Shown here: one piece after another, positions 20,179 through 64,000 of the stretch | Layout: each line of letters starts with the position of its first letter | Position numbering within the stretch: position 1 is the stretch's first letter | DNA from: Tubulanus polymorphus | Lineage: Eukaryota; Animalia; Nemertea | Direction: 5' to 3' | NCBI RefSeq assembly: GCF_964204645.1 | Contig: NC_134030.1 | Location: forward strand, 231,355 to 295,354 | DNA length: 64,000 nucleotides | Program-made: the position numbers and the translations under genes | The notes under the pieces: model-generated | Databases searched by the model: none | What the model was told of the DNA's origin: nothing | What the model saw: only the letters and a program-made list of their open reading frames with translations

Positions 20179-20237
20179 GATCGGCATTGAAATCTTCACA
20201 AATTAAGATTTTAATAGTTTTCTTTATTGTTGCAGAT

Positions 20238-26391: not shown

Positions 26392-27624
26392 TCAGATTTT
26401 TCTATTCCTTACAGATTCTTTTTTACAACAAAAACAAAAAGTAAATAGTTTAATAAATTCTTTCCGGAAAACTTTCAATGTCCCGATGTAAATAAAGAAA
26501 TTCACGCAGAAAACGAAATATCGTAACGTCCGCAGAAATTGGTCTAAACCATGCCATAAAGTTTTGAGAAAGAATAGTATATGATGATCTGTTAAACTGT
26601 TTGCAAAACCGGATATGAACATTGGATAATTTCTATAAAGCGAGTATCCAATAATGTACGAAAAGTTGAGGATGCATTTAACTGCAGCATACGGCAAAAC
26701 AAGTAAAACATACACAATAACTACAACTAGAAGAGTTTTACTGGCTGAAGATCGATGACGATCTGTTCTCTTCGCTCTCATCTCAGATCTCTTATTGCGT
26801 AATGAAGCAGTTAACACTGATAATATTACAATCATTATAGAAGGAAATATATCTTGTAAAAATGTTTTACCAGCAGCTATCGCTGTTGCCTGGGAATAAT
26901 GCAAAGGAGGGATTGACGTTTGACACCAAAAAGAATCAAATGTTTCGTTGTATCTGCGAATTTTGCGGAAATAAACACGACTGCGCATGATCGCTGAATC
27001 CAAGTTCATAAAATACGCCCAGAAGATGACAAAACCTACTGCAATTTTACGCCGAGTGACGGTGAAATGTTTCATGTGAAAGAAAGGAAAACGAATAGAA
27101 ACAAATCTCTCGATAGCGATCACTATAACTGTGTAGTTTGATACAGATATTGCCTGGTTATTAAATAGGTTTGAAAATATACACGCAGGAAACACTCGAC
27201 TGGGCAGATAGCTGAAATAGTAATAGAAATAGTAAAGTGATGGACATAGTTTACTGTGTTTAGCGAATGTCATATAACCGCTGAGACAGTCTCTATAAAA
27301 TCCTAGACGAACTACAAACTGTCTCAAAATAAAAGGGAATTTCTGTAACTCAAACAAGACGAAAATTTGATCTGAAAACGCGAGAGTTATGAGATAAGGG
27401 AACGTGTAACGAACCGACTGATATCTGCGACACTTTATCAGTAGAATTATTGTCAGAAAGTTGAACACACTTAACGGTGGAATTAAGAAGAGACTTTTGA
27501 ACGTCTCGTTATATCTGAGAATGAAGTTAGTAAATCTACTGAAAGCTATGATATAATCCGGTGTCTTCACAGGAATCCAGTATATTCTACGAGTTGTGGT
27601 GACGATAGCGGTAAAATTATCCAT
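26392..27624 (-). CDS. Class A (rhodopsin-like) 7TM GPCR, FMRFamide-receptor/Srw-like orphan, array copy 1 (subtype E)
   Basis: Motifs: TM1 N, TM2 LAFSD, TM3 IAIERF (DRY variant), TM4 W, TM5 P, TM6 LP, TM7 NFFIY, helix 8 FRKEF, CFCC. Start placed at the ATG of MDNFT (GTCATGG context). Confidence 0.9.
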   Translation of the reverse strand: MDNFTAIVTTTRRIYWIPVKTPDYIIAFSRFTNFILRYNETFKSLFLIPPLSVFNFLTIILLIKCRRYQSVRYTFPYLITLAFSDQIFVLFELQKFPFILRQFVVRLGFYRDCLSGYMTFAKHSKLCPSLYYFYYYFSYLPSRVFPACIFSNLFNNQAISVSNYTVIVIAIERFVSIRFPFFHMKHFTVTRRKIAVGFVIFWAYFMNLDSAIMRSRVYFRKIRRYNETFDSFWCQTSIPPLHYSQATAIAAGKTFLQDIFPSIMIVILSVLTASLRNKRSEMRAKRTDRHRSSASKTLLVVVIVYVLLVLPYAAVKCILNFSYIIGYSLYRNYPMFISGFANSLTDHHILFFLKTLWHGLDQFLRTLRYFVFCVNFFIYIGTLKVFRKEFIKLFTFCFCCKKESVRNRKI

Positions 27625-28134
27625 GACAAGAACAGAACAGTTTGACGCGACAATCTGTGTAGTAACTGCGTCCCTCACATTGTGGGTTACAGCCGCGGTA
27701 CCACGATTTCAAAATACTTCCATCAAACTCCTCCTACAGAACACACTATAATCATCTGAAGATTTCACACGCTCTGTTGAAATTACTACTCACACGATTC
27801 GCTCTGAGAGTTTACTAAAAATCCATCTGAAATAATCTAAGTTTCATATGTAAATTCGCAGCAGTTTTAGACTCGAGTTTATATACAGCCCACTGTAGAA
27901 CCACAAAGTTTGAATTTCGTGAATACAGGTCTCTGTGGTAACACGCGAGGCGTGAAAACTAATATATACCAGTATTAAAAATATACCAGCACTGATACAC
28001 TTCAAGTTCCATTGAGACACAAGAGGCGAAATGCAACAAACAGCATTTGGAAAATTTACTTATTTCCGATTATGTATTTGATTCAACTTTTTTACTGAAG
28101 CATTTCGTGTTTTCATATAGATGTACATAGACTA

Positions 28135-28272
28135 CGGGGAGCAGTTTCACCAAATAGTTTAAGCCTAAAACGGTTAAGTTTGAATTGCTGTCCTCATTGA
28201 AAACATGAAGTAACCAATGGCGGCAATTACACCAAAAATTTGAGTTTAACTTGTTTGTGAAACTGGGCCCTG
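28135..28272. mobile_element. 138-bp Tc1/mariner-type MITE in GPCR upstream region (11 copies starting at 28135, 31039, 33610, 36514, 39448, 42207, 48966, 51715, 56335, 61108, 63855)
   Basis: TIRs CAGGGAGCAGTTTCAC / GTGAAACTGGGCCCTG; several copies are flanked TA...TA (e.g. 33610-33747). Confidence 0.7.
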
Positions 28273-29330: not shown

Positions 29331-30557
29331 TCAATTATCCGTCGGATTTTTTTTCTGACTCACAGATTTTATTTTACAACAAAAACAATGAGTAAATAGT
29401 TTGATAAATTCTTTCCGGAAAACTTTCAATGTTCCGATGTAGATAAAGAAATTCACGCAAAAAACAAAGTGTCGAAATGTTTCCAGGAACCATGATAAGT
29501 AGATCCATAAAGTATCAAGAAAGAAGCCTAAATGAGGTTTTGATCGGTCATTGATGTCTATACCATAATCTCTTTTAAGCACTGGGAGTAAGGCGAGTAG
29601 TATATACTCAATGCATTTAACTGCAGCATGCGGTAAAACTAGTAAAATATACACAATAACTATAACTAGAAGAGTTTTATTGACTGAAGATTGATGACGA
29701 TCTGTTCTCTTCGCTCTCATCTCAGATCTCTTATTGCGTAATGAAGCAGTTAACACTGATAATTTCATAATCATTATAGATGGAAATATATCTTGTAAAA
29801 CTGTTCTCGCAACTGTCATTGCTCGTGCTTGGGTTCTGCTTATAGCGATTGACTGACGACACGTAAAAAGTTCGTATGTTTCGTTGTATCTATGAATTTT
29901 AACGAATTTAACACGACTGCTCAAGATTAAAGACTCCCAATTCATAAGATACGCCCAGAAGATGATAAAAACTACTGCAATTTTACGGCGAGTGACGGTG
30001 CAATGTTTCATGTGAAAGAAAGGAAAACGAATAGAAACAAATCTCTCGATAGCGATCACTATAACTGTGTAGTTTGATACAGATATTGCCTGGTTGTAGA
30101 ACAGGGTCCGAAGCAAACACTTCGGAAACAGTTTATTGGGCAGATGATGGAAATAGTAATAGAAATAGTAAAGTGATGGACATAGTTTACTGTGTTTAGC
30201 GAATAGAAAATAACTGCCACATCCTCTATAAAATCCCAGATGATAAACAACAAAATCTCTCAAATATACAGCGAAAGTCTGTAACTCAACCAAGACGACA
30301 AGTTGATCTGAAAACGCGATAGTTATGAGATAAGGGAACGTGTAACGAACTGACTGATATCTGCGACACTTTATGAGTAAAATTATTGTCAGAAAGTTAA
30401 ACACACTTCCCGGTGGAAGTAAGAAGAGATATTTGAATGTTTCCCTAAATACAACAGTGAAGGCTGAAAACCCCTTGAAAGCTAAGATGTATCCCGGTGT
30501 CTTCACAGTGGTGCGGTATATTCGAGTTGTAGTGACGATAGCGGTAAAATTGTCCAT
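29331..30557 (-). CDS. Class A GPCR, array copy 2 (subtype A)
   Basis: Same 7TM motifs; intact ORF from MDNFT. Confidence 0.9.
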   Translation of the reverse strand: MDNFTAIVTTTRIYRTTVKTPGYILAFKGFSAFTVVFRETFKYLFLLPPGSVFNFLTIILLIKCRRYQSVRYTFPYLITIAFSDQLVVLVELQTFAVYLRDFVVYHLGFYRGCGSYFLFAKHSKLCPSLYYFYYYFHHLPNKLFPKCLLRTLFYNQAISVSNYTVIVIAIERFVSIRFPFFHMKHCTVTRRKIAVVFIIFWAYLMNWESLILSSRVKFVKIHRYNETYELFTCRQSIAISRTQARAMTVARTVLQDIFPSIMIMKLSVLTASLRNKRSEMRAKRTDRHQSSVNKTLLVIVIVYILLVLPHAAVKCIEYILLALLPVLKRDYGIDINDRSKPHLGFFLDTLWIYLSWFLETFRHFVFCVNFFIYIGTLKVFRKEFIKLFTHCFCCKIKSVSQKKNPTDN

Positions 30558-31869: not shown

Positions 31870-33099
31870 TCAGATTTTGTTTCTTACAGATTTTATTTTA
31901 CAACAAAAACAATCAGTAAATAATTTAATAAATTCTTTCCGGAAAACTTTCAATGTTCCAATGTAAATAAAGAAATTCACGCAGAAAACGAAATATCGTA
32001 ACGTCCGCAGAAATTGGTCTAAACCATGCCATAAAGTTTTGAGAAAGAATCGATTATGATGATCTGTTAAACTGTTTGCAAAACCGGATATGAACATTGG
32101 ATAATTTCTATAAAGCGAGTATCCAATAATGTACGAAAAGTTGAGGATGCATTTAACTGCAGCATACGGCAAAACAAATAAAATATACACAATAACTACA
32201 ACTAGAAGAGTTTTACTGGCTGAAGATTGATGACGATCTGTTCTCTTCGCTCTCATCTCAGATCTCTTATTGCGTAATGAAGCAGTTAACACTGATAATA
32301 TTACAATCATTAAAGATGGAAATATATCTTGTAAAAATGTTTTTCCAGCTGCTATTGCTTGTGCCTGGGACCAATGCAAAGGAGGGATTGACTGTTCACA
32401 CACAAAAGAATCAAAGTTTTCTTTAAATCTGCGATGTTTGTGGAGATTAACACGACTGCGCATGATTACTGAATCCAAGTTCATAAAATACGCCCAGAAG
32501 ATGACGGAACCTACTGCAATTTTACGGCGAGTGACGGTGAAATGTTTCATGTGAAAGAAAGGAAAACGAATAGAAACAAATCTCTCGATAGCGATCACTA
32601 TAACTATGTAGTTTGATACAGATATTGCCTGGCTATGAAATAGGTTTGAAAATATACACGTAGGAAACACTCGACTGGGCAGATAATAGAAATAGTAATA
32701 GAAATAGTAAAGTGATGGACATAGTTTACTGTGTTTAGCGAATGTCAGATACGCACCGCGACATTCTCTATAAAATCCTAGATGATGAACTACAAAGCTT
32801 TTCAAACGATGAGGGAATCTGATCAACTCAAACAAGACGACAAGTTGATCTGAAAACGCGAGAGATATGAGATAAGGGAACGTGTAACGAACTGACTGAT
32901 ATCTGCGACACTTTATCAGTAAAATAATTGTCAGAAAGTTGAACACACTTAACGGTGGAATTAAGAAGACACATTTGAACATATCGTTATATCTGAGAAT
33001 GAAGTTAGTAAATCTCTTGAAAGCTAAGATGTATCCCGGTGTCTTCACAGTGATGCGGTATATTCGAGTTGTGGTGACGATAGCGGTAAAATTGTCCAT
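31870..33099 (-). CDS. Class A GPCR, array copy 3 (subtype E, mosaic)
   Basis: Same 7TM motifs; intact ORF; TM6-TM7 like copy 1, ECL2 start like subtype C. Confidence 0.9.
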   Translation of the reverse strand: MDNFTAIVTTTRIYRITVKTPGYILAFKRFTNFILRYNDMFKCVFLIPPLSVFNFLTIILLIKCRRYQSVRYTFPYLISLAFSDQLVVLFELIRFPHRLKSFVVHHLGFYRECRGAYLTFAKHSKLCPSLYYFYYYFYYLPSRVFPTCIFSNLFHSQAISVSNYIVIVIAIERFVSIRFPFFHMKHFTVTRRKIAVGSVIFWAYFMNLDSVIMRSRVNLHKHRRFKENFDSFVCEQSIPPLHWSQAQAIAAGKTFLQDIFPSLMIVILSVLTASLRNKRSEMRAKRTDRHQSSASKTLLVVVIVYILFVLPYAAVKCILNFSYIIGYSLYRNYPMFISGFANSLTDHHNRFFLKTLWHGLDQFLRTLRYFVFCVNFFIYIGTLKVFRKEFIKLFTDCFCCKIKSVRNKI

Positions 33100-34805: not shown

Positions 34806-36032
34806 TCAATTATCCGTCGGATTTTTTTTCTGACTCACAGATTTTATTTTACAACAAAAACAATGAGTAAATAGTTTGATAAATTCTTTCCGGAAAACTT
34901 TCAATGTTCCGATGTAGATAAAGAAATTCACGCAAAAAACAAAGTGTCGAAATGTTTCCAGGAACCATGATAAGTAGATCCATAAAGTATCAAGAAAGAA
35001 GCCTAAATGAGGTTTTGATCGGTCATTGATGTCTATACCATAATCTCTTTTAAGCACTGGGAGTAAGGCGAGTAGTATATACTCAATGCATTTTACTGCA
35101 GCATGCGGTAAAACTAGTAAAATATACACAATAACTATAACTAGAAGAGTTTTATTGACTGAAGATTGATGACGATCTGTTCTCTTCGCTCTCATCTCAG
35201 ATCTCTTATTGCGTAATGAAGCAGTTAACACTGATAATTTCATAATCATTATAGATGGAAATATATCTTGTAAAACTGTTCTCGCAACTGTCATTGCTCG
35301 TGCTTGGGTTCTGCTTATAGCGATTGACTGACGACACGTAAAAAGTTCGTATGTTTCGTTGTATCTATGAATTTTAACGAATTTAACACGACTGCTCAAG
35401 ATTAAAGACTCCCAATTCATAAGATACGCCCAGAAGATGATAAAAACTACTGCAATTTTACGGCGAGTGACGGTGCAATGTTTCATGTGAAAGAAAGGAA
35501 AACGAATAGAAACAAATCTCTCGATAGCGATCACTATAACTGTGTAGTTTGATACAGATATTGCCTGGTTGTAGAACAGGGTCCGAAGCAAACACTTCGG
35601 AAACAGTTTATTGGGCAGATGATGGAAATAGTAATAGAAATAGTAAAGTGATGGACATAGTTTACTGTGTTTAGCGAATAGAAAATAACTGCCACATCCT
35701 CTATAAAATCCCAGATGATAAACAACAAAATCTCTCAAATATACAGCGAAAGTCTGTAACTCAACCAAGACGACAAGTTGATCTGAAAACGCGATAGTTA
35801 TGAGATAAGGGAACGTGTAACGAACTGACTGATATCTGCGACACTTTATCAGTAAAATTATTGTCAGAAAGTTAAACACACTTCCCGGTGGAAGTAAGAA
35901 GAGATATTTGAATGTTTCCCTAAATACAACAGTGAAGGCTGAAAACCCCTTGAAAGCTAAGATGTATCCCGGTGTCTTCACAGTGGTGCGGTATATTCGA
36001 GTTGTGGTGACGATAGCGGAAAAATTGTCCAT
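34806..36032 (-). CDS. Class A GPCR, array copy 4 (subtype A)
   Basis: Near-identical to copy 2. Confidence 0.9.
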   Translation of the reverse strand: MDNFSAIVTTTRIYRTTVKTPGYILAFKGFSAFTVVFRETFKYLFLLPPGSVFNFLTIILLIKCRRYQSVRYTFPYLITIAFSDQLVVLVELQTFAVYLRDFVVYHLGFYRGCGSYFLFAKHSKLCPSLYYFYYYFHHLPNKLFPKCLLRTLFYNQAISVSNYTVIVIAIERFVSIRFPFFHMKHCTVTRRKIAVVFIIFWAYLMNWESLILSSRVKFVKIHRYNETYELFTCRQSIAISRTQARAMTVARTVLQDIFPSIMIMKLSVLTASLRNKRSEMRAKRTDRHQSSVNKTLLVIVIVYILLVLPHAAVKCIEYILLALLPVLKRDYGIDINDRSKPHLGFFLDTLWIYLSWFLETFRHFVFCVNFFIYIGTLKVFRKEFIKLFTHCFCCKIKSVSQKKNPTDN

Positions 36033-37715: not shown

Positions 37716-38966
37716 TCACGGAGCCGGGTTTTTTAAAGGAACATCAATTATCCGTCGGATATTTCTTCCCACAGATTTCATTTTACAACAAAAACAATCA
37801 GTAAATAGTTTAATTAATTCTTTCCGGAAAACTTTCAATGTTCCGGTGTAGATAAAGAAATTCACGCAAAAAACAAAGTGTCGAAATGTTTCCAGGAACC
37901 ATGATAAGTAGATCCATAAAGTATCAAGAAAGAAGCCTAAATGAGGTTTTGATCGGTCATTGATGTCTATACCATAATCTCTTTTAAGCACTGGGAGTAA
38001 GGCGAGTAGTATATACTCAATGCATTTTACTGCAGCATGCGGTAAAACTAGTAAAATATACACAATAACTATAACTAGAAGAGTTTTATTGACTGAAGAT
38101 TGATGACGATCTGTTCTCTTCGCTCTCATCTCAGATCTCTTATTGCGTAATGAAGCAGTTAACACTGATAATTTCATAATCATTATAGATGGAAATATAT
38201 CTTGTAAAACTGTTCTCGCAACTGTCATTGCTCGTGCTTGGGTTCTGCTTATAGCGATTGACTGACGACACGTAAAAAGTTCGTATGTTTCGTTGTATCT
38301 ATGAATTTTAACGAATTTAACACGACTGCTCAAGATTAAAGACTCCCAATTCATAAGATACGCCCAGAAGATGATAAAAACTACTGCAATTTTACGGCGA
38401 GTGACGGTGCAATGTTTCATGTGAAAGAAAGGAAAACGAATAGAAACAAATCTCTCGATAGCGATCACTATAACTGTGTAGTTTGATACAGATATTGCCT
38501 GGTTGTAGAACAGGGTCCGAAGCAAACACTTCGGAAACAGTTTATTGGGCAGATGATGGAAATAGTAATAGAAATAGTAAAGTGATGGACATAGTTTACT
38601 GTGTTTAGCGAATAGAAAATAACTGCCACATCCTCTATAAAATCCCAGATGATAAACAACAAAATCTCTCAAATATACAGCGAAAGTCTGTAACTCAACC
38701 AAGACGACAAGTTGATCTGAAAACGCGATAGTTATGAGATAGGGGAACGTGTAACGAACTGACTGATATCTGCGACACTTTATCAGTAAAATTATTGTCA
38801 GAAAGTTAAACACACTTCCCGGTGGAAGTAAGAAGAGATATTTGAATGTTTCCCTAAATACAACAGTGAAGGCTGAAAACCCCTTGAAAGCTAAGATGTA
38901 TCCCGGTGTCTTCACAGTGGTGCGGTATATTCGAGTTGTGGTGACGATAGCGGTAAAATTGTCCAT
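37716..38966 (-). CDS. Class A GPCR, array copy 5 (subtype A, longer C-tail)
   Basis: Near-identical to copies 2 and 4 up to helix 8; different C-terminal frame. Confidence 0.9.
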   Translation of the reverse strand: MDNFTAIVTTTRIYRTTVKTPGYILAFKGFSAFTVVFRETFKYLFLLPPGSVFNFLTIILLIKCRRYQSVRYTFPYLITIAFSDQLVVLVELQTFAVYLRDFVVYHLGFYRGCGSYFLFAKHSKLCPSLYYFYYYFHHLPNKLFPKCLLRTLFYNQAISVSNYTVIVIAIERFVSIRFPFFHMKHCTVTRRKIAVVFIIFWAYLMNWESLILSSRVKFVKIHRYNETYELFTCRQSIAISRTQARAMTVARTVLQDIFPSIMIMKLSVLTASLRNKRSEMRAKRTDRHQSSVNKTLLVIVIVYILLVLPHAAVKCIEYILLALLPVLKRDYGIDINDRSKPHLGFFLDTLWIYLSWFLETFRHFVFCVNFFIYTGTLKVFRKELIKLFTDCFCCKMKSVGRNIRRIIDVPLKNPAP

Positions 38967-40168: not shown

Positions 40169-40193
40169 TATTTATATCAGGGAAGTGACGTCA
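40169..40193 (-). promoter_or_regulatory. Candidate CRE (TGACGTCA)/ETS plus TATAAATA module, repeated in six spacers
   Basis: Minus strand GTGACGTCACTTCCCTGATATAAATA, oriented with the GPCR genes; motif match only. Confidence 0.3.
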
Positions 40194-40425
40194 CAGCTTA
40201 GCTCCTTACGGCTATTGTTGGAATTAACATTTGTGGAGATTAAATCACCTACATAAACATTAATTCTATTTATAGTTTCGAAAGCATTGAATTTCCGTAG
40301 AAATTAATGGACTACAATTTAATCCAACTTTAAAGGAGTCACGTGGAGTAATCAATATTTCAGTCCCCTGTATAAATAGTTCACTGATGAAATCCAGGTT
40401 CAGGAATTTCGAAAATGAAAATGAA

Positions 40426-41697
40426 TCACACAAATTCGGGTTCTTTGGCGTTTATACGACAGATTATGTTCCCTATTTTACAACAAAAACAATCAGTAAA
40501 TAGTTTGATAAATTCTTTCCGGAAAACTTTCAATGTTCCGATGTAAATAAAGAAATTCATGCAGAAAACGAAATGTCGAAACGTTCGCAGGAAAATGTCT
40601 AAACCATACCATAAAATTTTGAGAAAGAATCGATTATGGTGATCTGTTAAACTGTTTGTAAAACTGTTTGTTAAATAGGATAGCATCCACATTGCATAAT
40701 TTCTATAAAGCGAGTATCCAATGACGTGCGCTAAGTTTTGGATACAATTACATGCTGCGTGCGGCAAAACTAGTAAAATATACACAATAACTACAACAAG
40801 AAGAGTTTTACTGGCTGAAGATTGATGACGATCTGTTCTCTTCGCTCTCATCTCAGATCTCTTATTGCGTAATGAAGCAGTTAACACTGATAATATTACA
40901 ATCAATAAAGATGGAAATATATCTTGTAAAAATGTTTTTACAGCGTCTATTGCTTGTATCAGGGACCCATTGGAAATATAGATTGACTGTTCACACACAA
41001 AAGAATCAAAGATTTCTTTATATCTGCGATGTTTGTGGAGATTAACACGACTGCGCATGATTACTGAATCCAAGTTCATAAAATACGCCCAGAAGATGAC
41101 AAAAACTACTGCAATTTTACGCCGAGTGACGGTGAAATGTTTCATGTGAAAGAAAGGAAAACGAATAGAAACAAATCTCTCAATAGCGATCACTATAACT
41201 GTGTAGTTTGATACAGATTTTGCCTGGCTATAAAATAGGTTTGAAAATATACACGCAGGAAACACTCGTCTGGGCAGATAATAGAAATAGTAATTGAAAT
41301 AGTAAAGTGATGGACATAGTTTACTGTGTTTAGCGAATGTCAGATAAACACTGCGACATTCTCTATAAAATCCTAGATTATTAACTACAAACATGTTCAA
41401 ATAATTGGGGAATTTTTCCAATTCAAACAAGACGACAAGTTGATCTGAAAACGCGATAGTTATCAGATAGGGGAACGTGTAACGAACTGACTGATAACTG
41501 CGACATTTTATCAGTAAAATTATGGTCAGAAAGTTGAATACACTTCCCGGTGGAAACAAGAAGACACATCTGAATATATCGTTATATCTGATCATGAAGT
41601 TAGTAAATCTTCTGAAAGCTATGATATAATCCGGTGTCTTCACAGGAGTCCAGTGTATTCTACGAGTTGTGGTGGCTATAGCGGTTAAATTATCCAT
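40426..41697 (-). CDS. Class A GPCR, array copy 6 (subtype C)
   Basis: Same 7TM motifs; intact ORF. Confidence 0.9.
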   Translation of the reverse strand: MDNLTAIATTTRRIHWTPVKTPDYIIAFRRFTNFMIRYNDIFRCVFLFPPGSVFNFLTIILLIKCRSYQSVRYTFPYLITIAFSDQLVVLFELEKFPNYLNMFVVNNLGFYRECRSVYLTFAKHSKLCPSLYYFNYYFYYLPRRVFPACIFSNLFYSQAKSVSNYTVIVIAIERFVSIRFPFFHMKHFTVTRRKIAVVFVIFWAYFMNLDSVIMRSRVNLHKHRRYKEIFDSFVCEQSIYISNGSLIQAIDAVKTFLQDIFPSLLIVILSVLTASLRNKRSEMRAKRTDRHQSSASKTLLVVVIVYILLVLPHAACNCIQNLAHVIGYSLYRNYAMWMLSYLTNSFTNSLTDHHNRFFLKILWYGLDIFLRTFRHFVFCMNFFIYIGTLKVFRKEFIKLFTDCFCCKIGNIICRINAKEPEFV

Positions 41698-49962: not shown

Positions 49963-51234
49963 TCACACAGATTCGGGTTCTTTGAAGTTTATACGACAGA
50001 TTGTGTTCCCTATTTTACAACAAAAACAATCAGTAAATAGTTTGATAAATTCTTTCCGGAAAACTTTCAATGTTCCGATGTAAATAAAGAAATTCATGCA
50101 GAAAACGAAATGTCGAAACGTTCGCAGGAAAATGTCTAAACCATACCATAAAATTTTGAGAAAGAATCGATTATGATGATCTGTTAAACTGTTTGTAAAA
50201 CTGTTTGTTAAATAGGATAGCATCCACATTGCATAATTTCTATAAAGCGAGTATCCAATGACGTGCGCTAAGTTTTGGATACAATTACATGCTGCGTGCG
50301 GCAAAACTAGTAAAATATACACAATAACTACAACAAGAAGAGTTTTACTGGCTGAAGATTGATGACGATCTGTTCTCTTCGCTCTCATCTCAGATCTCTT
50401 ATTGCGTAATGAAGCAGTTAACACTGATAATATTACAATCATTAAAGATGGAAATATATCTTGTAAAAATGTTTTTACAGCGTCTATTGCTTGTATCAGG
50501 GACCCATTGGAAATATAGATTGACTGTTCACACACAAAAGAATCAAAGATTTCTTTATATCTGCGATGTTTGTGGAGATTAACACGACTGCGCATGATTA
50601 CTGAATCCAAGTTCATAAAATACGCCCAGAAGATGACAAAAACTACTGCAATTTTACGGCGAGTGACGGTGAAATGTTTCATGTGAAAGAAAGGAAAACG
50701 AATAGAAACAAATCTCTCGATAGCGATCACTATAACTGTGTAGTTTGATACAGATATTGCCTGGTTATAAAATAGGTTTGAAAATATACACGCAGGAAAC
50801 ACTCGTCTGGGCAGATAATAGAAATAGTAATTGAAATAGTAAAGTGATGGACATAGTTTACTGTGTTTAGCGAATGTCAGATAAACACTGCGACATTCTC
50901 TATAAAATCCTAGATTATTAACTACAAACATGTTCAAATAATTGGGGAATTTTTCCAATTCAAACAAGACGACAAGTTGATCTGAAAACGCGATAGTTAT
51001 CAGATAAGGGAACGTGTAACGAACTGACTGATAACTGCGACATTTTATCAGTAAAATTATGGTCAGAAAGTTGAACACACTTCCCGGTGGAAACAAGAAG
51101 ACACATCTGAATATATCGTTATATCTGATCATGAAGTTAGTAAATCTTCTGAAAGCTATGATATAATCCGGTGTCTTCACAGTGGTCCAGTGTATTCTAC
51201 GAGTTGTGGTGGCTATAGCGGTGAAATTATCCAT
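49963..51234 (-). CDS. Class A GPCR, array copy 10 (subtype C)
   Basis: Near-identical to copies 6 and 15. Confidence 0.9.
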   Translation of the reverse strand: MDNFTAIATTTRRIHWTTVKTPDYIIAFRRFTNFMIRYNDIFRCVFLFPPGSVFNFLTIILLIKCRSYQSVRYTFPYLITIAFSDQLVVLFELEKFPNYLNMFVVNNLGFYRECRSVYLTFAKHSKLCPSLYYFNYYFYYLPRRVFPACIFSNLFYNQAISVSNYTVIVIAIERFVSIRFPFFHMKHFTVTRRKIAVVFVIFWAYFMNLDSVIMRSRVNLHKHRRYKEIFDSFVCEQSIYISNGSLIQAIDAVKTFLQDIFPSLMIVILSVLTASLRNKRSEMRAKRTDRHQSSASKTLLVVVIVYILLVLPHAACNCIQNLAHVIGYSLYRNYAMWMLSYLTNSFTNSLTDHHNRFFLKILWYGLDIFLRTFRHFVFCMNFFIYIGTLKVFRKEFIKLFTDCFCCKIGNTICRINFKEPESV

Positions 51235-52578: not shown

Positions 52579-53832
52579 TTAATCCAACTCTTTGAAGTTT
52601 ATACGACGGATCATCTTCCTTATCTTACAACAAAAACAATCAGTAAATAGTTTAATAAATTCTTTCTGGAAAACTTTCAATGTTCCGATGTAAATAAAGA
52701 AATTCACGAAGAACACAAATTGTCGAAATGTTACCAGAAATTGGTCTAAACCAAACCATAAAGTATTGATAAAGAATCGTTTATGATGATCTGTTAAACT
52801 GGATGTTGTTATCAAAATGAGCCACATTGCATAATTTCTATAAAGCAATCTTCCAATAACGTATGTAAAACTGTAGATACAATAAACTACAGCATGCGGT
52901 AAAACTAGTAAAACATACACAATAACTACAACTAGAAGAGTTTTACTGGCTGAAGATTGATGACGATCTGTTCTCTTCGCTCTCATCTCAGATCTCTTAT
53001 TGCGTAATGAAGCAGTTAACACTGATAATATTACAATCATTATAGAAGGAAATATATCTTGTAAAAATGTTTTACCAGCAGCTATCGCTTGTGCCTGGGA
53101 CTGATGCGAATAAGAGATTGACTGTTTACACTTAAAATTGTTAAATGTTTCGTTGTATCTGCGAAATTTACCGAGATACACACGACTGCGCATGATTGCT
53201 GAATCCAAGTTCATAAAATACGCCCAGAAGATGACAAAACCTACTGCAATTTTACGGCGAGTGACGGTGAAATGTTTCATGTGAAAGAAAGGAAAACGAA
53301 TAGAAACAAATCTCTCGATAGCGATCACTATAACTGTGTAGTTTGATACAGATTTTGCCTGGTTATAAAATAGGTTCCGAAATATACACGCAGGAAACAC
53401 TTGTCTGGGCAGATAATAGAAATAGTAATAGAAATAGTAAAGTGATGGACATAGTTTACTGTGTTTAGCGAATGTCAGGTAACTAACGTAACATTCTCTA
53501 TAAAATCCTAGACGAGTAGTTACAAACCTTTTCAAATAATTGGGGAAACTCTGTAACTCAAACAAGACGACAAGTTGATCTGAAAACGCGATAGTTATCA
53601 GATAGGGGAACGTGTAACGAACTGACTGATATCTGCGACACTTTATCAGTAAAATTATTGTCAGAAAGTTAAACACACTTCCCGGCGGAAGCAAGAACAC
53701 ATTTCTGAATATGCTGTTATATCTGATAATGAAGTCAGTAAATCTCTTGAAAGCTATGATATAATCCGGTGTCTTCACAGGAGTCCAGTGTATTCTACGA
53801 GTTGTGGTGACGATAGCGGTAAAATTATCCAT
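52579..53832 (-). CDS. Class A GPCR, array copy 11 (subtype D)
   Basis: Intact 417-aa ORF from MDNFT; C-end altered by a 3' deletion. Confidence 0.9.
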   Translation of the reverse strand: MDNFTAIVTTTRRIHWTPVKTPDYIIAFKRFTDFIIRYNSIFRNVFLLPPGSVFNFLTIILLIKCRRYQSVRYTFPYLITIAFSDQLVVLFELQSFPNYLKRFVTTRLGFYRECYVSYLTFAKHSKLCPSLYYFYYYFYYLPRQVFPACIFRNLFYNQAKSVSNYTVIVIAIERFVSIRFPFFHMKHFTVTRRKIAVGFVIFWAYFMNLDSAIMRSRVYLGKFRRYNETFNNFKCKQSISYSHQSQAQAIAAGKTFLQDIFPSIMIVILSVLTASLRNKRSEMRAKRTDRHQSSASKTLLVVVIVYVLLVLPHAVVYCIYSFTYVIGRLLYRNYAMWLILITTSSLTDHHKRFFINTLWFGLDQFLVTFRQFVFFVNFFIYIGTLKVFQKEFIKLFTDCFCCKIRKMIRRINFKELD

Positions 53833-54635: not shown

Positions 54636-55853
54636 TCAGATTGTTTTATTTCTTACATATTTTATTTTACAACAAAAACAATCAGTAAATAGTTTAATAA
54701 ATTCTTTCCGGAAAACTTTCAATGTTCTGATGTAGATAAATAAATTCACGCAGAACACAAATTGTCGAAATGGTATCAAGAACCATTGTACGTCGGTCCA
54801 TAAAGCAATAAGAAAGAAGCCTAAATGAGGTCTTGATCGGTCATAGGTGTCTATACCATAATCTCTTTTAAGCACTGGGAGTAAGGCGTATATTGTATAC
54901 TGAATGCTTTTAACTGCAGCATGCGGGAAAACTAGTAAAACATACACCATAACTATAACTAGTAGAGTTTTACTGGCTGAAGATTGATGACGATCTGTTC
55001 TCTTCGCTCTCATCTCAGATCTCTTATTGCGTAATGAAGCAGTTAACACTGATAATATTACAATCATTAAAGAAGGCAATATATCTTGTAAAGATGTTTT
55101 CCCAACTGTTATTGCTCGTGTCCGGGTTATGCTCGTAGCGATTAACTGATCACACCGAAAAAAGTCGTATGTTTCGTTGTATCTTGGAATTTTATCGAAA
55201 GTAACGCGACTGCGCAAGATTAAAGAATCCAAGTTCATAAGATACGCCCAGAAGATCACGGAACCTACTGCAATTTTACGCCGAGTGACGGTGCAATGTT
55301 TCATGTGAAAGAAAGGAAAACGAATAGAAACAAATCTCTCGATAGCGATCACTAAAACTGTGTAGTTTGATACAGATATTGCCTGGTTGTAGAATAGGGT
55401 CCGTAGCAAACACGTAGGAAACAGTTTATTGGGCAGATGCCGGAAATAGTAATTGAAATCGTAAAGTGATGGACATAGTTTCCTGTGTTTAGCGAATAGA
55501 AAATAACTGGCACATGCTCTACTATAAAATCCTAGACGATAAACAACGAACTCTCTCAAATGTAAAGGGAAACCCTTTACCTGAAACAAGACGACAAGTT
55601 GATCTGAAAACGCGATAGTTATGAGATAGGGGAACGTGTAACGAACTGACTGATAACTGCGACACTTTATCAGTAAGATTATTGTCAGAAAGTTAAACAC
55701 ACTTCCCGGTGGAAGTAAGAAGAGATAATTGATTGTGTTGCTAAATAAAACACCGAACTTTGCAAACCCTTTGAAAGCTATGATATATCCCGGTGTCTTC
55801 ACAGTGGTGCGGTATATTCGAGTTGTGGTGACGATAGCGGTAAAATTATCCAT
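54636..55853 (-). CDS. Class A GPCR, array copy 12 (subtype B)
   Basis: Same 7TM motifs; intact ORF. Confidence 0.9.
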   Translation of the reverse strand: MDNFTAIVTTTRIYRTTVKTPGYIIAFKGFAKFGVLFSNTINYLFLLPPGSVFNFLTIILLIKCRSYQSVRYTFPYLITIAFSDQLVVLFQVKGFPLHLREFVVYRLGFYSRACASYFLFAKHRKLCPSLYDFNYYFRHLPNKLFPTCLLRTLFYNQAISVSNYTVLVIAIERFVSIRFPFFHMKHCTVTRRKIAVGSVIFWAYLMNLDSLILRSRVTFDKIPRYNETYDFFRCDQLIATSITRTRAITVGKTSLQDILPSLMIVILSVLTASLRNKRSEMRAKRTDRHQSSASKTLLVIVMVYVLLVFPHAAVKSIQYTIYALLPVLKRDYGIDTYDRSRPHLGFFLIALWTDVQWFLIPFRQFVFCVNLFIYIRTLKVFRKEFIKLFTDCFCCKIKYVRNKTI

Positions 55854-57317: not shown

Positions 57318-58577
57318 TCACACAGATTCGGGTTCTTTGAAGTTTATACGACAGATTATGTTCCTTATCTTACAACAAAAACAGTCAGTAAATAGTTTAA
57401 TAAATTCTTTCCGGAAAACTTTTAATGTTCCGATGTAAATAAAGAAATTCACGAAGAACACAAATTGTCGAAATGTTACCAGAAATTGGTATAAACCAAA
57501 CCATAAAGTATTGATAAAGAATCGTTTATGATGATCTGTTAAACTGGATGTTGTTATCAAAATGAGCCACATTGCATAATTTCTATAAAGCAATCTTCCA
57601 ATAACGTATGTAAAACTGTAGATACAATAAACTACAGCATGCGGTAAAACTAGTAAAACATACACAATAACTACAACAAGAAGAGTTTTACTGGCTGAAG
57701 ATTGATGACGATCTGTTCTCTTCGCTCTCATCTCAGATCTCTTATTGCGTAATGAAGCAGTTAACACTGATAATATTACAATCATTATAGAAGGAAATAT
57801 ATCTTGTAAAAATGTTTTACCAGCAGCTATCGCTTGTGCCTGGGACTGATGCGAATAAGAGATTGACTGTTCACACTTAAAATTGTTAAATGTTTCGTTG
57901 TATCTGCGAAATTTACCGAGATACACACGACTGCGCATGATTGCTGAATCCAAGTTCATAAAATACGCCCAGAAGATGACAAAACCTACTGCAATTTTAC
58001 GGCGAGTGACGGTGAAATGTTTCATGTGAAAGAAAGGAAAACGAATAGAAACAAATCTCTCGATAGCGATCACTATAACTGTGTAGTTTGATACAGATTT
58101 TGCCTGGTTATAAAATAGGTTCCGAAATATACACGAAGGAAACACTTGTCTGGGCAGATAATAGAAATAGTAATAGAAATAGTAAAGTGATGGACATAGT
58201 TTACTGTGTTTAGCGAATGTCAGATAACCACTGAGACATTCTCTATAAAATCCTAGACGAGTAGTAACAAACCTTTTCAAATAATTGGGGAAACTCTGTA
58301 ACTCAAACAAGACGACAAGTTGATCTGAAAACGCGATAGTTATCAGATAAGGGAACGTGTAACGAACTGACTGATAACTGCGACATTTTATCAGTAAAAT
58401 TATTGTCAGAAAGTTAAACACACTTCCCGGCGGAAGCAAGAACACATTTCTGAATATGCTGTTATATCTGATAATGAAGTCAGTAAATCTCTTGAAAGCT
58501 ATGATATAATCCGGTGTCTTCACAGGAGTCCAGTGTATTCTACGAGTCGTGGTGACGAAAGCGGTAAAATTATCCAT
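57318..58577 (-). CDS. Class A GPCR, array copy 13 (subtype D)
   Basis: Intact 419-aa ORF; near-identical to copy 11. Confidence 0.9.
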   Translation of the reverse strand: MDNFTAFVTTTRRIHWTPVKTPDYIIAFKRFTDFIIRYNSIFRNVFLLPPGSVFNFLTIILLIKCRSYQSVRYTFPYLITIAFSDQLVVLFELQSFPNYLKRFVTTRLGFYRECLSGYLTFAKHSKLCPSLYYFYYYFYYLPRQVFPSCIFRNLFYNQAKSVSNYTVIVIAIERFVSIRFPFFHMKHFTVTRRKIAVGFVIFWAYFMNLDSAIMRSRVYLGKFRRYNETFNNFKCEQSISYSHQSQAQAIAAGKTFLQDIFPSIMIVILSVLTASLRNKRSEMRAKRTDRHQSSASKTLLVVVIVYVLLVLPHAVVYCIYSFTYVIGRLLYRNYAMWLILITTSSLTDHHKRFFINTLWFGLYQFLVTFRQFVFFVNFFIYIGTLKVFRKEFIKLFTDCFCCKIRNIICRINFKEPESV

Positions 58578-59380: not shown

Positions 59381-60598
59381 TCAGATTGTTTTATTTCTTA
59401 CATATTTTATTTTACAACAAAAACAATCAGTAAATAGTTTAATAAATTCTTTCCGGAAAACTTTCAATGTTCTGATGTAGATAAATAAATTCACGCAGAA
59501 CACAAATTGTCGAAATGGTATCAAGAACCATTGTACGTCGGTCCATAAAGCAATAAGAAAGAAGCCTAAATGAGGTCTTGATCGGTCATAGGTGTCTATA
59601 CCATAATCTCTTTTAAGCACTGGGAGTAAGGCGTATATTGTATACTGAATGCTTTTAACTGCAGCATGCGGGAAAACTAGTAAAACATACACCATAACTA
59701 TAACTAGTAGAGTTTTACTGGCTGAAGATTGATGACGATCTGTTCTCTTCGCTCTCATCTCAGATCTCTTATTGCGTAATGAAGCAGTTAACACTGATAA
59801 TATTACAATCATTAAAGAAGGCAATATATCTTGTAAAGATGTTTTCCCAACTGTTATTGCTCGTGTCCGGGTTATGCTCGTAGCGATTAACTGATCACAC
59901 CGAAAAAAGTCGTATGTTTCTTTGTATCTTGGAATTTTATCGAAAGTAACGCGACTGCGCAAGATTAAAGAATCCAAGTTCATAAGATACGCCCAGAAGA
60001 TGACGGAACCTACTGCAATTTTACGGCGAGTGACGGTGCAATGTTTCATGTGAAAGAAAGGAAAACGAATAGAAACAAATCTCTCAATAGCGATCACTAA
60101 AACTGTGTAGTTTGATACAGATATTGCCTGGTTGTAGAATAGGGTCCGTAGCAAACACGTAGGAAACAGTTTATTGGGCAGATTACGGAAATAGTAATCG
60201 AAATCGTAAAGTGATGGACATAGTTTCCTGTGTTTAGCGAATAGAAAATAACTGGCACATGCTCTACTATAAAATCCTAGACGATAAACAACGAACTCTC
60301 TCAAATGTAAAGGGAAACCCTTTACCTGAAACAAGACGACAATTTGATCTGTAAACGCGAGAGTTATGAGATAGGGGAACGTGTAACGAACTGACTGATA
60401 TCTGCGACACTTTATCAGTAAAATTATTGTCAGAAAGTTAAACACACTTCCCGGTGGAAGTAAGAAGAGAAAATTGATTGTGTTGCTAAATAAAGCAGCG
60501 AACTTTGCAAACCCCTTGAAAGCTAAGATGTATCCCGGTGTCTTCACAGTGGTGCGGTATATTCGAGTTGTAGTGACGATAGCGGTAAAATTGTCCAT
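59381..60598 (-). CDS. Class A GPCR, array copy 14 (subtype B)
   Basis: Same 7TM motifs; intact ORF. Confidence 0.9.
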   Translation of the reverse strand: MDNFTAIVTTTRIYRTTVKTPGYILAFKGFAKFAALFSNTINFLFLLPPGSVFNFLTIILLIKCRRYQSVRYTFPYLITLAFTDQIVVLFQVKGFPLHLREFVVYRLGFYSRACASYFLFAKHRKLCPSLYDFDYYFRNLPNKLFPTCLLRTLFYNQAISVSNYTVLVIAIERFVSIRFPFFHMKHCTVTRRKIAVGSVIFWAYLMNLDSLILRSRVTFDKIPRYKETYDFFRCDQLIATSITRTRAITVGKTSLQDILPSLMIVILSVLTASLRNKRSEMRAKRTDRHQSSASKTLLVIVMVYVLLVFPHAAVKSIQYTIYALLPVLKRDYGIDTYDRSRPHLGFFLIALWTDVQWFLIPFRQFVFCVNLFIYIRTLKVFRKEFIKLFTDCFCCKIKYVRNKTI

Positions 60599-62102
60599 GA
60601 CAAGAACAGAACAGTTTGACGTGACAATCAGTGTAGTGACTGCTTCCCTCACATTGTGGGTTACAGCCGCGGTACCACGATTTCAAAATACTTCCATCAA
60701 ACTCCTGCTACAGAACACACTATAATCATCTGAAGATTTTACACGCTCTGTTGAAATTACTACTCACACGATTCGCTCTGAGAGTTTACTAAAAATCCAT
60801 CTGAAATAATTTAAGTTTCATATGAAAATTCGCAGCAGTTTTAGACTCGAGTTTATATACAGACAACTGTAGAACCATAAAGTTTGAATTTCGTGAATAC
60901 AGGTCTCTGTGGTAACATGTGAGGCGTGAAAACTAATATATACCAGTATTACATATACCAGCACTGATACACTTCAAGTTCCATTGAGACACAAGAGGCG
61001 AAATGCAACAAACAGCATTTGGAAAATTTACTTATTTCCGATTATGTATTTGATTCAACTTTTTTACTGAAGCATTTCATGTGTTTCATATAGATGTACA
61101 TAGACTACAGGGAGCAGTTTCACCAAATAGTTTAAGCCTAAAACGGTTAAGTTTGAATTGCTGTCCTCATTGAAAACATGAAGTAACCAATGGCGGCAAT
61201 TACACCAAAAATTTGAGTTAAACTTGTTCGTGAAACTGGGCCCTGTAGGAAGTTACTGTCAGTACTATTAGATCGATGAGACATATTTAACGACCATACG
61301 ACATACATCGCGCCCGATCTACAATCGTTACCCCCACCGTCCTTGAAGTGTTGCTTGTATACCACAATGCTGATGGGATAGCAGGAGTTTCTGCGTCTCA
61401 ACAAAAAACTCAACAATTCACCGTTATCTCTCTGTACATAAATGTTTATAACTTTTATTTTCATTGAACGAATTTTTTTGTAAAAATGTTTTACAACATA
61501 TTTGAATGATTCAACTGCATCTCTGCAATGACTAGATTTTACACCCCAGCACCTCAACCCCCCCCCCCCCCTTACACCCCCCCCCCCCGAGTCAAATACG
61601 AACTGTATATCTGTGGACTGAGCATTTACTGAGTATTTACTATAAATACAATTTCCTTGTTCTCCTGCAGAATATGACTTAAGGCCGATACCGACGTTTT
61701 TGGTTGGGCCTAACAGGCTCGGGCCCATTCGGCACCTGTCTGAACAGGGCCAAATTTGGCACGGACCAAAAATGCTCTCGTGTGATCGGGGCTATGGATG
61801 GAAATCATACACGGATAGTGATTTCTGTTAGTGGAATCGGTGGAGTATTTATATCAGGGAAGTGACGTCACAGCTTAGCTCCTTGCGGCTATTGTTGGAA
61901 TTAACATTTGTGGAGGTTAAATCACCTACATAAACATTAATTCTATTTATAGTTTCGAAAGCATTGAATTTCCGTAGAAATTAATGGACTACAATTTAAT
62001 CCAACTTTAAAGGAGTCACGTGGAGTAATCAATATTTCAGTCCCCTGTATAAATAGTTCACTGATGAAATCCAGGTTCAGGAATTTCGAAAATGAAAATG
62101 AA

Positions 62103-63374
62103 TCACACAGATTCGGGTTCTTTGGCGTTTATACGACAGATTATGTTCCCTATTTTACAACAAAAACAATCAGTAAATAGTTTGATAAATTCTTTCCGGA
62201 AAACTTTCAATGTTCCGATGTAAATAAAGAAATTCATGCAGAAAACGAAATGTCGAAACGTTCGCAGGAAAATGTCTAAACCATACCATAAAATTTTGAG
62301 AAAGAATCGATTATGATGATCTGTTAAACTGTTTGTAAAACTGTTTGTTAAATAGGATAGCATCCACATTGCATAATTTCTATAAAGCGAGTATCCAATG
62401 ACGTGCGCTAAGTTTTGGATACAATTACATGCTGCGTGCGGCAAAACTAGTAAAATATACACAATAACTACAACAAGAAGAGTTTTACTGGCTGAAGATT
62501 GATGACGATCTGTTCTCTTCGCTCTCATCTCAGATCTCTTATTGCGTAATGAAGCAGTTAACACTGATAATATTACAATCATTATAGAAGGCAATATATC
62601 CTGTAAAAATGTTTTTACAGCGTCTATTGCTTGTATCAGGGACCCATTGGAAATATAGATTGACTGTTCACACACAAAAGAATCAAAGATTTCTTTATAT
62701 CTGCGATATTTGTGGAGATTAACACGACTGCGCATGATTACTGAATCCAAGTTCATAAAATACGCCCAGAAGATGACAAAAACTACTGCAATTTTACGCC
62801 GAGTGACGGTGAAATGTTTCATGTGAAAGAAAGGAAAACGAATAGAAACAAATCTTTCGATAGCGATCACTATAACTGTGTAGTTTGATACAGATATTGC
62901 CTGGTTATAAAATAGGTTTGAAAATATACACGCAGGAAACACTCGTCTGGGCAGATAATAGAAATAGTAATTGAAATAGTAAAGTGATGGACATAGTTTA
63001 CTGTGTTTAGCGAATGTCAGATAAACACTGCGACATTCTCTATAAAATCCTAGATTATTAACTACAAACATGTTCAAATAATTGGGGAATTTTTCCAATT
63101 CAAACAAGACGACAAGTTGATCTGAAAACGCGATAGTTATCAGATAAGGGAACGTGTAACGAACTGACTGATAACTGCGACACTTTATCAGTAAAATTAT
63201 GGTCAGAAAGTTGAACACACTTCCCGGTGGAAACAAGAAGACACATCTGAATATATCGTTATATCTGATCATGAAGTTAGTAAATCTTCTGAAAGCTATG
63301 ATATAATCCGGTGTCTTCACAGTGGTCCAGTGTATTCTACGAGTTGTGGTGGCTATAGCGGTAAAATTATCCAT
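62103..63374 (-). CDS. Class A GPCR, array copy 15 (subtype C)
   Basis: Near-identical to copies 6 and 10. Confidence 0.9.
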   Translation of the reverse strand: MDNFTAIATTTRRIHWTTVKTPDYIIAFRRFTNFMIRYNDIFRCVFLFPPGSVFNFLTIILLIKCRSYQSVRYTFPYLITIAFSDQLVVLFELEKFPNYLNMFVVNNLGFYRECRSVYLTFAKHSKLCPSLYYFNYYFYYLPRRVFPACIFSNLFYNQAISVSNYTVIVIAIERFVSIRFPFFHMKHFTVTRRKIAVVFVIFWAYFMNLDSVIMRSRVNLHKYRRYKEIFDSFVCEQSIYISNGSLIQAIDAVKTFLQDILPSIMIVILSVLTASLRNKRSEMRAKRTDRHQSSASKTLLVVVIVYILLVLPHAACNCIQNLAHVIGYSLYRNYAMWMLSYLTNSFTNSLTDHHNRFFLKILWYGLDIFLRTFRHFVFCMNFFIYIGTLKVFRKEFIKLFTDCFCCKIGNIICRINAKEPESV

Positions 63375-64000
63375 GACAAGAACAGAACTGTTTGACGTGA
63401 CAATCTGTGTGTAGTTAGCGACTTCCCTCAAATTATAGGTTCAGCGGTACCACAATTTCAAAATACTCCCATCAAACTCCTGCTACAGAACACACTATAA
63501 TCATCTAAACATTTCACACGCTCTGTTGAAATTACTACTCACACGATTCGCTCTGAGAGTTTACTAAAAATCCATCTGAAATAATCTAAGTTTCATATGA
63601 AAATTCGCAGCAGTTTTAGACTAGAGTTTATATACAGCCAACTGTAGAACCATAAAGTTTGAATTTCGTAAATACAGGTCTCTGTGGTAACACGCGAGGT
63701 GTAAAAACTAATATATACTAGTATTACATATACCAGCACTGATACACTTCAAGTTCCATTGAGACACAAGAGGCGAAATGCAACAAACAGCATTTGGAAA
63801 ATTTACTTATTTCCGATTATGTATTTATTGATTCAACCTTCTGTACATAGACTACAGGGAGCAGTTTCACCAAATAGTTTAAGCCTAAATCAGTTAAGTT
63901 TGAATTGTTGTCCTCATTGAAAACATGAAGTAACCAATGGCGGCAATTACACCTAAAATTTGAGTTAAATTTGTTTGTGAAACTGGGCCCTGTAGGAAGT

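Follow-up and report, generated by a model that had tools for sequence, protein, structure and literature searches.

A tandem array of intronless genes encoding class A (rhodopsin-type) G-protein-coupled receptors (GPCRs) extends from position 26392 to the end of a 64,000-nucleotide stretch of the genome of the nemertean Tubulanus polymorphus (hereafter the window; C6:231355-295354 of a 268-Mb, 77-contig assembly). The members of this array are mosaics, in which short blocks that are nearly identical between receptor subtypes even at silent sites are interleaved, within an exon of 1.2 kb, with five variable blocks. The pattern probably reflects concerted evolution restricted to parts of the gene, operating mainly within the cluster and in combination with purifying selection, with the variable blocks escaping it. 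An earlier note, made from the sequence of the window, had described a tandem array of 15 receptor genes, and 15 minus-strand open reading frames (ORFs) of 382-423 amino acids, arranged head to tail at a spacing of 2.0-2.9 kb, are indeed present; however, 14 of the units (g1 to g15) are intact and the seventh is frameshifted. The copy g8 serves as the reference for the structural model and for residue numbering. The subtypes proposed in the note were recovered from the matrix of amino acid identities, namely A (g2, g4 and g5; 97-99%), B (g8, g9, g12 and g14; 94-97%), C (g6, g10 and g15; 97-98%), D (g11 and g13; 96%), a looser E (g1 and g3; 86%) and g7 on its own (F).

Silent divergence is distributed unevenly along the gene. 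Proportions of synonymous and nonsynonymous differences (pS and pN) were estimated by the Nei-Gojobori method in sliding windows over 28 between-subtype pairs, and pS was found to be 0.00 over the alignment columns 121-140, 161-200 and 271-300 and 0.3-0.7 in variable stretches; the uniform silent divergence that the earlier note had regarded as fatal to its interpretation is thus not what the gene displays. Three core blocks, C2 (core of the first extracellular loop, ECL1), C3 (third transmembrane segment, TM3, to the second intracellular loop, ICL2) and C4 (TM5-ICL3-TM6), have pS values of about 0.00, 0.03 and 0.04, respectively. In g8 they lie on the minus strand at 46070..46105 (C2; residues 120-131, extracellular, with Cys127; pS 0.00), 45881..45994 (C3; residues 157-194, comprising inner TM3, the ERF motif and ICL2; pS between subtypes about 0.01-0.03) and 45560..45697 (C4; residues 256-301, comprising inner TM5, ICL3 and inner TM6; pS 0.03-0.06). 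The constant blocks C1 and C5 (TM7 to helix 8) show pS of 0.16 and 0.20, both with low pN, and the variable blocks V1-V5 show pS of 0.26-0.37 with pN of 0.19-0.29. Among the latter, V4 (g8, 45698..45880, minus strand) covers TM4, the ECL2 hairpin and outer TM5, and V5 (45371..45559, minus strand) covers outer TM6, ECL3 and outer TM7, with pS 0.33 and pN 0.29 between subtypes. Degenerate codons whose amino acid is invariant among the eight subtypes vary silently in 3 of 78 cases in C2-C4 and in 33 of 106 cases elsewhere (Fisher p=1.3e-6), and the same test on a paralogous cluster on contig C5 gives 3 of 83 in the core against 46 of 159 elsewhere.

Since the silent sites of the core are identical as well, its constancy goes beyond what selection on the protein alone would produce. 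An ordinary birth-and-death family shaped by protein-level purifying selection, with no exchange of sequence, would account for the constant motifs being conserved as protein throughout the family, down to an overall identity of 42-45%. It is contradicted by the non-uniform synonymous divergence and by the codon counts given above, and also by the recombination signal, the mosaic block types and the donor-matched patches described below, and is regarded as very improbable.

Variability was mapped onto an AlphaFold model from the eight subtype representatives and was seen to follow the membrane topology. The outward half (N-terminus, outer halves of the TM segments and ECLs) has a pN of 0.227 and a pS of 0.275 and the inward half a pN of 0.062 and a pS of 0.125, an amino acid difference about four-fold higher on the outward side. 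The receptors had been described as invariant on the intracellular face and hypervariable on the extracellular one, which holds apart from two exceptions. The ECL1 core (residues 119-137) is extracellular yet nearly invariant (pS 0.00) and contains an invariant 12-residue block, FAKH..CPSLY (g8 residues 120-131); the C-terminal tail is cytoplasmic yet variable (pN 0.36). The near-identity at DNA level reported for the constant motifs was reproduced for TM3/ICL2 and ICL3, with 96-99% identity between subtypes in 60-nucleotide (nt) windows and perfect runs of 60 and 53 nt common to all eight representatives. Helix 8, for which the same had been stated, is conserved as protein, but its silent sites are looser (pS 0.10 for helix 8 alone, against 0.00 in TM3/ICL2 and ICL3), as are those of the protein-conserved TM7-helix 8 block as a whole.

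Recombination has left a strong signal in the array. The pairwise homoplasy index (PHI) test returns z=-14.8, and none of 1000 permutations gave so low a value. The block types are incongruent along the genes: g1 and g3 are alike in TM6-TM7 and unlike in the N-terminal blocks, and a copy at C6:2.78 Mb (L030) carries one variable block of type C and another of type D. Copies that are otherwise almost the same differ in short stretches, each an exact match to another subtype, for instance a 15-nt ECL1 patch of g13 that equals the corresponding sequence of g1 and of the array copy g20, and the tails of g13 and g20 match other subtypes. We infer gene conversion as the mechanism behind these patterns, and the homogenisation of intracellular segments suggested in the earlier note fits the identical silent sites of the core blocks.

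The flanking DNA was compared in a similar manner. Pairwise BLAST shows the 5' flank from -730 to -231 to be 95-98% identical whatever the subtype of the gene (89-91% between two sub-types), with the exception of sites where the short 3' flank of B-type genes intrudes, and the 3' flanks fall into four groups, each common to several subtypes. In the comparison of types C and F, the 3' flank is 98.7% identical, the core pS is 0.00 and the variable blocks have a pS of 0.46. Because a flank divergence of 1.3% and a core divergence of 0.00 stand against 0.46 in this pair, the variable blocks appear as deeply diverged islands in units that otherwise look young. When 900-nt flanks were placed in a multiple alignment, the intergenic DNA had seemed unalignable between subtypes; this was an alignment artefact, as pairwise BLAST recovers the shared flanks, and the argument for old subtypes that had been drawn from the flanks was withdrawn.

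Selection was assessed by a parsimony count on block-specific trees of 34 genes. The ratio of nonsynonymous to synonymous change (omega) is 0.14-0.37 in the inner TM segments and 0.94-1.08 in ECL2, outer TM5 and outer TM6. For V1-V5 together it reaches 1.41 in the clade A/B/G plus L009 and L012, two inverted copies at C6:381-385 kb (274 nonsynonymous and 54 synonymous changes; p about 0.01), with 1.77 for V5 alone, and it is 0.96 in the clade C/D/E; the constant blocks outside the core have an omega of 0.20-0.22 in both clades. Between subtypes A and B, pN/pS is 2.0 (p=0.0095), and V5 differs by 23 nonsynonymous and 0 synonymous changes. Recent pairs within subtypes show an omega of 0.46 outward and 0.34 inward, with no excess of replacements. 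Since 19 of the 21 units of the whole array are intact, decay is not the reason for an omega close to 1 in about 45% of the protein. Diversifying selection is plausible, although the signs of it are no more than suggestive.

Another explanation is that the array is simply young, its members being recent duplicates whose variable blocks have since diverged by strong positive selection and/or a locally raised mutation rate, with no homogenisation. The flanks and the core concur on a divergence of 1-5% for many pairs, and the omega above 1 in the variable blocks of clade A/B/G, together with the exclusively nonsynonymous V5 differences between A and B, would be expected from it. However, the silent divergence of the variable blocks is 0.44-0.46 where the 3' flanks are 97-99% identical, and silent sites do not diverge faster because the protein is under selection. 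C1 and C5, which are constant blocks, likewise reach a pS of 0.16-0.20 at an omega of 0.2, and some variable-block types are common to loci 2.5 Mb away. We know of no germline mechanism, templated conversion excepted, for hypermutation limited to blocks. A young array with fast variable blocks is accordingly considered an unlikely origin of the pattern.

A further possibility, to which a slightly larger but still small weight is given, is that the constraint lies in the nucleotide sequence itself and not in conversion, the core coding sequence carrying an RNA or DNA element such as an mRNA structure, a small-RNA target or a regulatory or choice element. The core pS against distant subfamilies is 0.17-0.67, compared with 0.7-0.95 in the TM7-helix 8 block; the third positions of the core are AT-rich, with a GC content at fourfold sites of 0.18 against 0.34-0.48; and the perfect runs, at 53-60 nt, are short and end abruptly, all of which such an element would explain. 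It would not explain that the same amino acids are encoded with silent differences specific to each cluster. One Ile codon is changed in all eight genes of the contig-C5 cluster and in no gene of contig C6, and the clusters at C7:15.4 Mb and on contig C3 each have a private set of silent core variants, with 9-10 differences in the former. Block C3 has a pS of 0.01 when the array genes are compared with one another; the value is higher in comparisons with the contig-C5 cluster (0.09), contig C3 (0.13), C7:15.4 Mb (0.24) and distant subfamilies (0.26-0.67), and 24-40% of the core codons with an invariant residue differ silently between subfamilies. A separate subfamily at C9:2.6 Mb has pS dips of 0.02-0.09 at ICL1, TM3-ICL2, TM5-ICL3-TM6 and TM7-helix 8, which surround a different ICL3 sequence; its ECL1 core shows no dip. 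The homogenisation of the non-coding flanks is likewise at odds with an element confined to the core.

An artefact of assembly or polishing, in which multi-mapping reads drew the repeats toward a consensus and created false identity, was also weighed, the identical blocks being the most repeated parts of the genes. It appears the least probable of the explanations considered. The core retains its cluster-specific silent variants, and near-identical copies still differ at scattered sites. Moreover, in a DNA data set of a different study, filed under the same species label, raw reads pile up to a depth of ~85 over the bin containing part of block C3, compared with 10-30 nearby. Over the proximal 5' block of the genes (see below) these reads reach ~350, against a background of ~10-30; the two pile-ups are consistent with the 5' block and part of C3 being common to many copies.

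Several observations weigh against region-restricted concerted evolution, or against the diversifying selection proposed alongside it, and need to be set beside the above. The GC content at third codon positions is not raised in the core (0.28, against 0.36 in the variable blocks), so that the GC-bias signature seen in protocadherins is absent. The GC bias of gene conversion is not universal, and its absence therefore weakens the case for conversion without excluding it. The core pS lies below that of the other blocks even between distant subfamilies on other chromosomes, and some silent-site constraint or rare ectopic exchange is therefore needed in the model. The paralogue comparisons all come from a single genome. 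Positive selection at outward-facing sites, as anticipated by the earlier note, is found as an omega of 1.41 over V1-V5 in one clade and not at individual sites, the lowest p among 162 sites being 0.014 and none remaining significant after correction; nor do the pairwise excesses pass the Bonferroni correction, the best of the 66 non-independent pairs having p=0.004. With respect to expression, a search for sequencing runs containing the stretch returned DNA-like runs and none labelled as RNA, and two runs of transcriptome-like size, filed under the same species label, gave nothing on 43000-48900, which is not evidence of silence.

Region-restricted concerted evolution would operate as follows. 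The half of the receptor that faces the G protein is under strong purifying selection (omega about 0.2); it consists of ICL1, ICL2 and ICL3, the inner parts of TM3 (with ERF), TM5, TM6 and TM7 (with NFFIY), and helix 8. The outward half, made up of the N-terminal helix, the outer parts of TM1 and of TM4 to TM7, most of ECL1, the ECL2 hairpin and ECL3, evolves at or above the neutral rate. In addition, paralogues would swap sequence by non-allelic gene conversion and unequal recombination. Inside a cluster, this exchange would keep the three core blocks alike at silent sites, together with parts of the flanks (the shared 5' flank and, only among subtypes of one group, the 3' flank), and would act less tightly on the proximal 5' block. 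The five variable blocks may escape either because converted variants are selected against or because their divergence now blocks pairing. The outcome would be a set of receptors unlike in binding that probably feed one signalling pathway through a common G-protein coupling, with a presumably sensory, most likely chemosensory, role.

The family belongs to class A. Five copies tested against Pfam match 7tm_1 (PF00001) with 43-48 bits (cut-off 30.5; E about 1e-12) and no other meaningful family, and 7tm_1 is matched in all 28 members of a family alignment (best E=2e-15) whose sequences are 42-79% identical to g8. The hallmarks tested were N1.50, D2.50, the pair Cys3.25-ECL2 Cys, E/DRY, P5.50, P6.50 and NPxxY, with the helices placed according to the model. 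N54, D84, C148, C234, P260, P310, E172-R173 (ERF) and N370..Y374 (NFFIY, with Phe replacing Pro) are invariant or at least 90% conserved among the 28 members. The AlphaFold model built on this alignment (predicted local distance difference test score, pLDDT, 78.9; predicted TM-score, pTM, 0.76) has seven TM helices and helix 8, a long, partly helical ECL1 (54 residues, 93-146) and an ECL2 in the form of a beta-hairpin. The topology is backed by features of the alignment, namely a sequon at N3 (NFT), a NET sequon in ECL2, basic ICL1, ICL2 and ICL3 and a Cys cluster after helix 8. The ECL1 region of g8 (window 45995-46195, residues 90-156) additionally has conserved C113 and C127, besides the canonical C148-C234 pair, and an invariant Tyr/Phe-rich stretch. 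Among the PDB matches that Foldseek returned at E<=0.001, at least 500 in number, class A peptide receptors (SSTR1, CCR1, TRHR, NMUR2 and opioid receptors) rank first, with TM-scores of 0.63-0.71, normalised by target, at 13-20% identity; a profile search of PDB sequences gave weak matches to A2A (E=5e-7), followed by NPFF1, beta-1, GHSR and NMUR2.

Searches for relatives support an orphan, apparently lineage-restricted class A repertoire without one-to-one orthologues in the libraries searched. A word-indexed search of 5.8 billion proteins found no relative at E<=1e-3, and in a profile search of 1.84 billion representative proteins the best match had an E of 1.6e-13 and none reached 1e-30, the coverage of nemertean proteomes by both libraries being uncertain. 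The array and this lack of a close relative in the protein libraries agree with the lineage-specific tandem repertoire postulated in the earlier note. The closest remote matches are unnamed metagenomic or Logan proteins, a Globodera class A receptor and a Lingula 'probable GPR139'; several remote relatives (P0003-P0008) show weak to moderate matches to Srw, and the neighbour clusters in a language-model embedding (Atlas) are molluscan, nematode, rotifer and nemertean 7tm_1/Srw proteins, one cluster being named 'putative FMRFamide receptor'. The label Srw/FMRFamide-receptor-like had been attached to the array; some remote relatives and neighbour clusters carry Srw and one cluster has the FMRFamide-receptor name, but none of the 28 family members matches Pfam Srw (PF10324) at E<=1, and the only match among the other nematode chemoreceptor families of Pfam is one to Srx at E=0.54. 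The affinity is thus a lead and does not amount to membership.

The genes share a proximal 5' block of about 225 nt, located in g8 at 46463..46690 (minus strand), which is 84-94% identical between subtypes and is probably the core promoter or 5' untranslated region. It carries at -130 the 9-mer TGATTATAG. Each of the 20 array genes examined has this motif between -127 and -130 relative to its ATG; within the window the sites, all on the minus strand, are at 27754, 30687, 33229, 36162, 39096, 41827, 44570 and 46592 (upstream of g1-g8) and at 48614, 51363, 53959, 55983, 58704, 60728 and 63503 (upstream of g9-g15). The motif is also found upstream of paralogues on other contigs and stands at -77 in the distant subfamily on contig C10 (L055-L057). 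Possible identities are a TATA-like element of the core promoter and a homeodomain-type site. A poly(A) signal lies 30-240 nt past the stop codon in most of the 20 genes; the members of the array therefore look like self-contained single-exon genes.

The locus represents a new family within a known type of repertoire, evolving in a known mode. Large tandem, lineage-specific expansions of class A GPCRs, proposed to be chemoreceptors and without orthologues in other taxa, have been described in two nemertean genomes, and lophotrochozoan expansions show a higher entropy at the extracellular ends of the TM segments and in the loops, with an ECL1 of 15-20 residues (PMC11886862). The present array resembles these in its tandem class A clusters, in the lack of detected outside orthologues and in the more variable outer TM ends and loops, and differs in an ECL1 of about 54 residues with an invariant Cys-containing core. 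Gene conversion and recombination are not treated in that study, the words being absent from its text. In clustered protocadherins, regional gene conversion homogenises one part of the gene and leaves the recognition part diverse (PMC1852091; review PMC3966226; Noonan et al. 2004 as cited there). Common to both systems are tandem paralogues with one part more than 99% identical at nucleotide level, including silent sites, a diverse recognition part, homogenised sequence that is specific to each cluster or subcluster, and, on the reading preferred here for the array, conversion and selection acting together. Unlike the protocadherins, which have one long 3' tract, the array consists of single-exon GPCR genes in which several homogenised blocks, each only about 36-140 nt long, are interspersed with five variable ones, GC content at third positions is not raised, and neither shared constant exons nor alternative splicing occurs.

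With the vertebrate olfactory and V1R and the nematode Srw families the array shares intronless or simple class A genes, large tandem arrays with pseudogenes, birth-and-death turnover, diverse binding pockets and conserved proximal promoters. For V1R genes, promoter conservation and gene conversion are reportedly discussed in PMC1955453 and PMC2644715. Unlike the Srw chemoreceptors, the array is not placed by profile: it is not matched by Pfam Srw, and its best sequence matches of solved structure are A2A, NPFF1 and beta-1 at E=5e-7 or weaker. Towards FMRFamide-receptor-like and GPR139-like receptors the links are the Lingula 'probable GPR139' among the remote matches, an ECL2 beta-hairpin as in peptide receptors, and neighbour clusters named molluscan 'putative FMRFamide receptor' and nemertean 'GHSR-like', the similarity being very remote (best E=1.6e-13; 14-20% identity to solved structures). 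The traits particular to the locus are the interleaving of short homogenised blocks with five variable blocks in a 1.2-kb exon, the long ECL1 with its invariant core and the uniformly placed promoter motif.

The diversification of nemertean class A families has so far been described only as high entropy of the binding pocket. The array offers a quantifiable case, in which silent divergence differs more than ten-fold between blocks tens of codons apart, and suggests that exchange between paralogues, besides selection on the protein, shapes such repertoires; whole-gene trees and dN/dS scans of these families would mislead unless the genes are partitioned. It also provides a natural set of chimeras for deorphanisation, with one signalling core and different pockets, and a defined conserved promoter block that is testable for receptor choice. 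It is conceivable, though doubtful, that the homogenised blocks serve as built-in pairing sites for swapping the five ligand-facing modules (cassette shuffling in the germline), with the TGATTATAG promoter supporting a stochastic choice of one receptor per cell. If true, this combination would be an invertebrate counterpart of the logic of olfactory receptors and protocadherins, in a family without close relatives.

The units of the array, all on the minus strand, are distributed in the window as follows. g1 (26392..27624) is intact with 410 amino acids and is of subtype E1, as judged from its ORF, Pfam 7tm_1 and the identity matrix. Subtype A comprises g2 (29331..30557, intact, 408 amino acids), g4 (34806..36032, intact, 408 amino acids, with 99-100% amino acid identity to g2) and g5 (37716..38966, intact, 416 amino acids, its C-terminal tail replaced). 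g3 (31870..33099, intact, 409 amino acids, subtype E3) is a mosaic of an A/B-like N-terminus and E-type TM6-TM7. The intact copies of subtype C, each of 423 amino acids, are g6 (40426..41697), g10 (49963..51234) and g15 (62103..63374), and those of subtype B, each of 405 amino acids, are g8 (45245..46462), g9 (47267..48484), g12 (54636..55853) and g14 (59381..60598). Subtype D is represented by g11 (52579..53832, intact, 417 amino acids) and g13 (57318..58577, intact, 419 amino acids), which combines the ECL1 patch of the E1 copies with a C-type tail. In g7 (43192..44440, subtype F) the canonical ATG is at 44440 and an insertion of 4 nt in TM1, near 44280, shifts the frame; the listed ORF of 382 amino acids begins at an internal Met at 44340, and the remainder of its frame is open. 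The long ORFs at 20187-21023 (plus), 23949-25391 (plus) and 61147-61728 (minus), beside or inside the array, have no usable family match in Pfam; the one of 480 amino acids shows a sub-threshold match to DUF5568.

The array goes on past position 64000, as the earlier note had expected, with one disrupted unit followed by five intact units up to C6:314,413 and then by unrelated sequence, so that the whole array spans 88 kb. The disrupted unit (G000:C6:296212-298380) consists of a B-like N-terminal fragment and an L009-like C-terminal fragment as two ORF pieces, with ~1 kb between them replacing the TM3-ICL2 core block. At C6:381-385 kb L009 and L012 follow as two further copies, and further clusters of the family lie on contigs C5, C7, C8, C9, C10 and C12. 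Genome-wide the family has at least 103 copies (103 scored matches, all at E<=5e-73, out of 458 candidates) on at least nine contigs.

Raw DNA reads and the paralogues on other contigs provided some additional observations. In one raw DNA run filed under the same species label (X4), 4805 of the 6216 reads on 43000-48900 match at only 90-95%, which could be due to cross-mapping of paralogues, a very divergent individual or both. Downstream of B-type genes, the stretches 44970-45166, 46940-47136 and 44576-44772 have a read depth 10-40 times that of the neighbouring DNA, and many of the reads there link opposite strands (e.g. 44634/46673); these stretches look like a high-copy inverted-repeat element resembling miniature inverted-repeat transposable elements (MITEs). 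The subfamily on contig C9 (L058-L069, G000:C9:2605261-2657812) carries N-terminal QLLPTR-like proline-rich repeats in variable number, and its cluster occurs twice among the matches of the genome search, offset by ~50.9 kb and with the same scores each time, pointing either to a segmental duplication of very recent date or to a duplication in the assembly. The copies L024 (G000:C7:7.31 Mb) and L026 (G000:C5:24.39 Mb) are nearly alike in their variable blocks despite their location on different contigs, a likeness that indicates a recent inter-chromosomal duplication of a family member.

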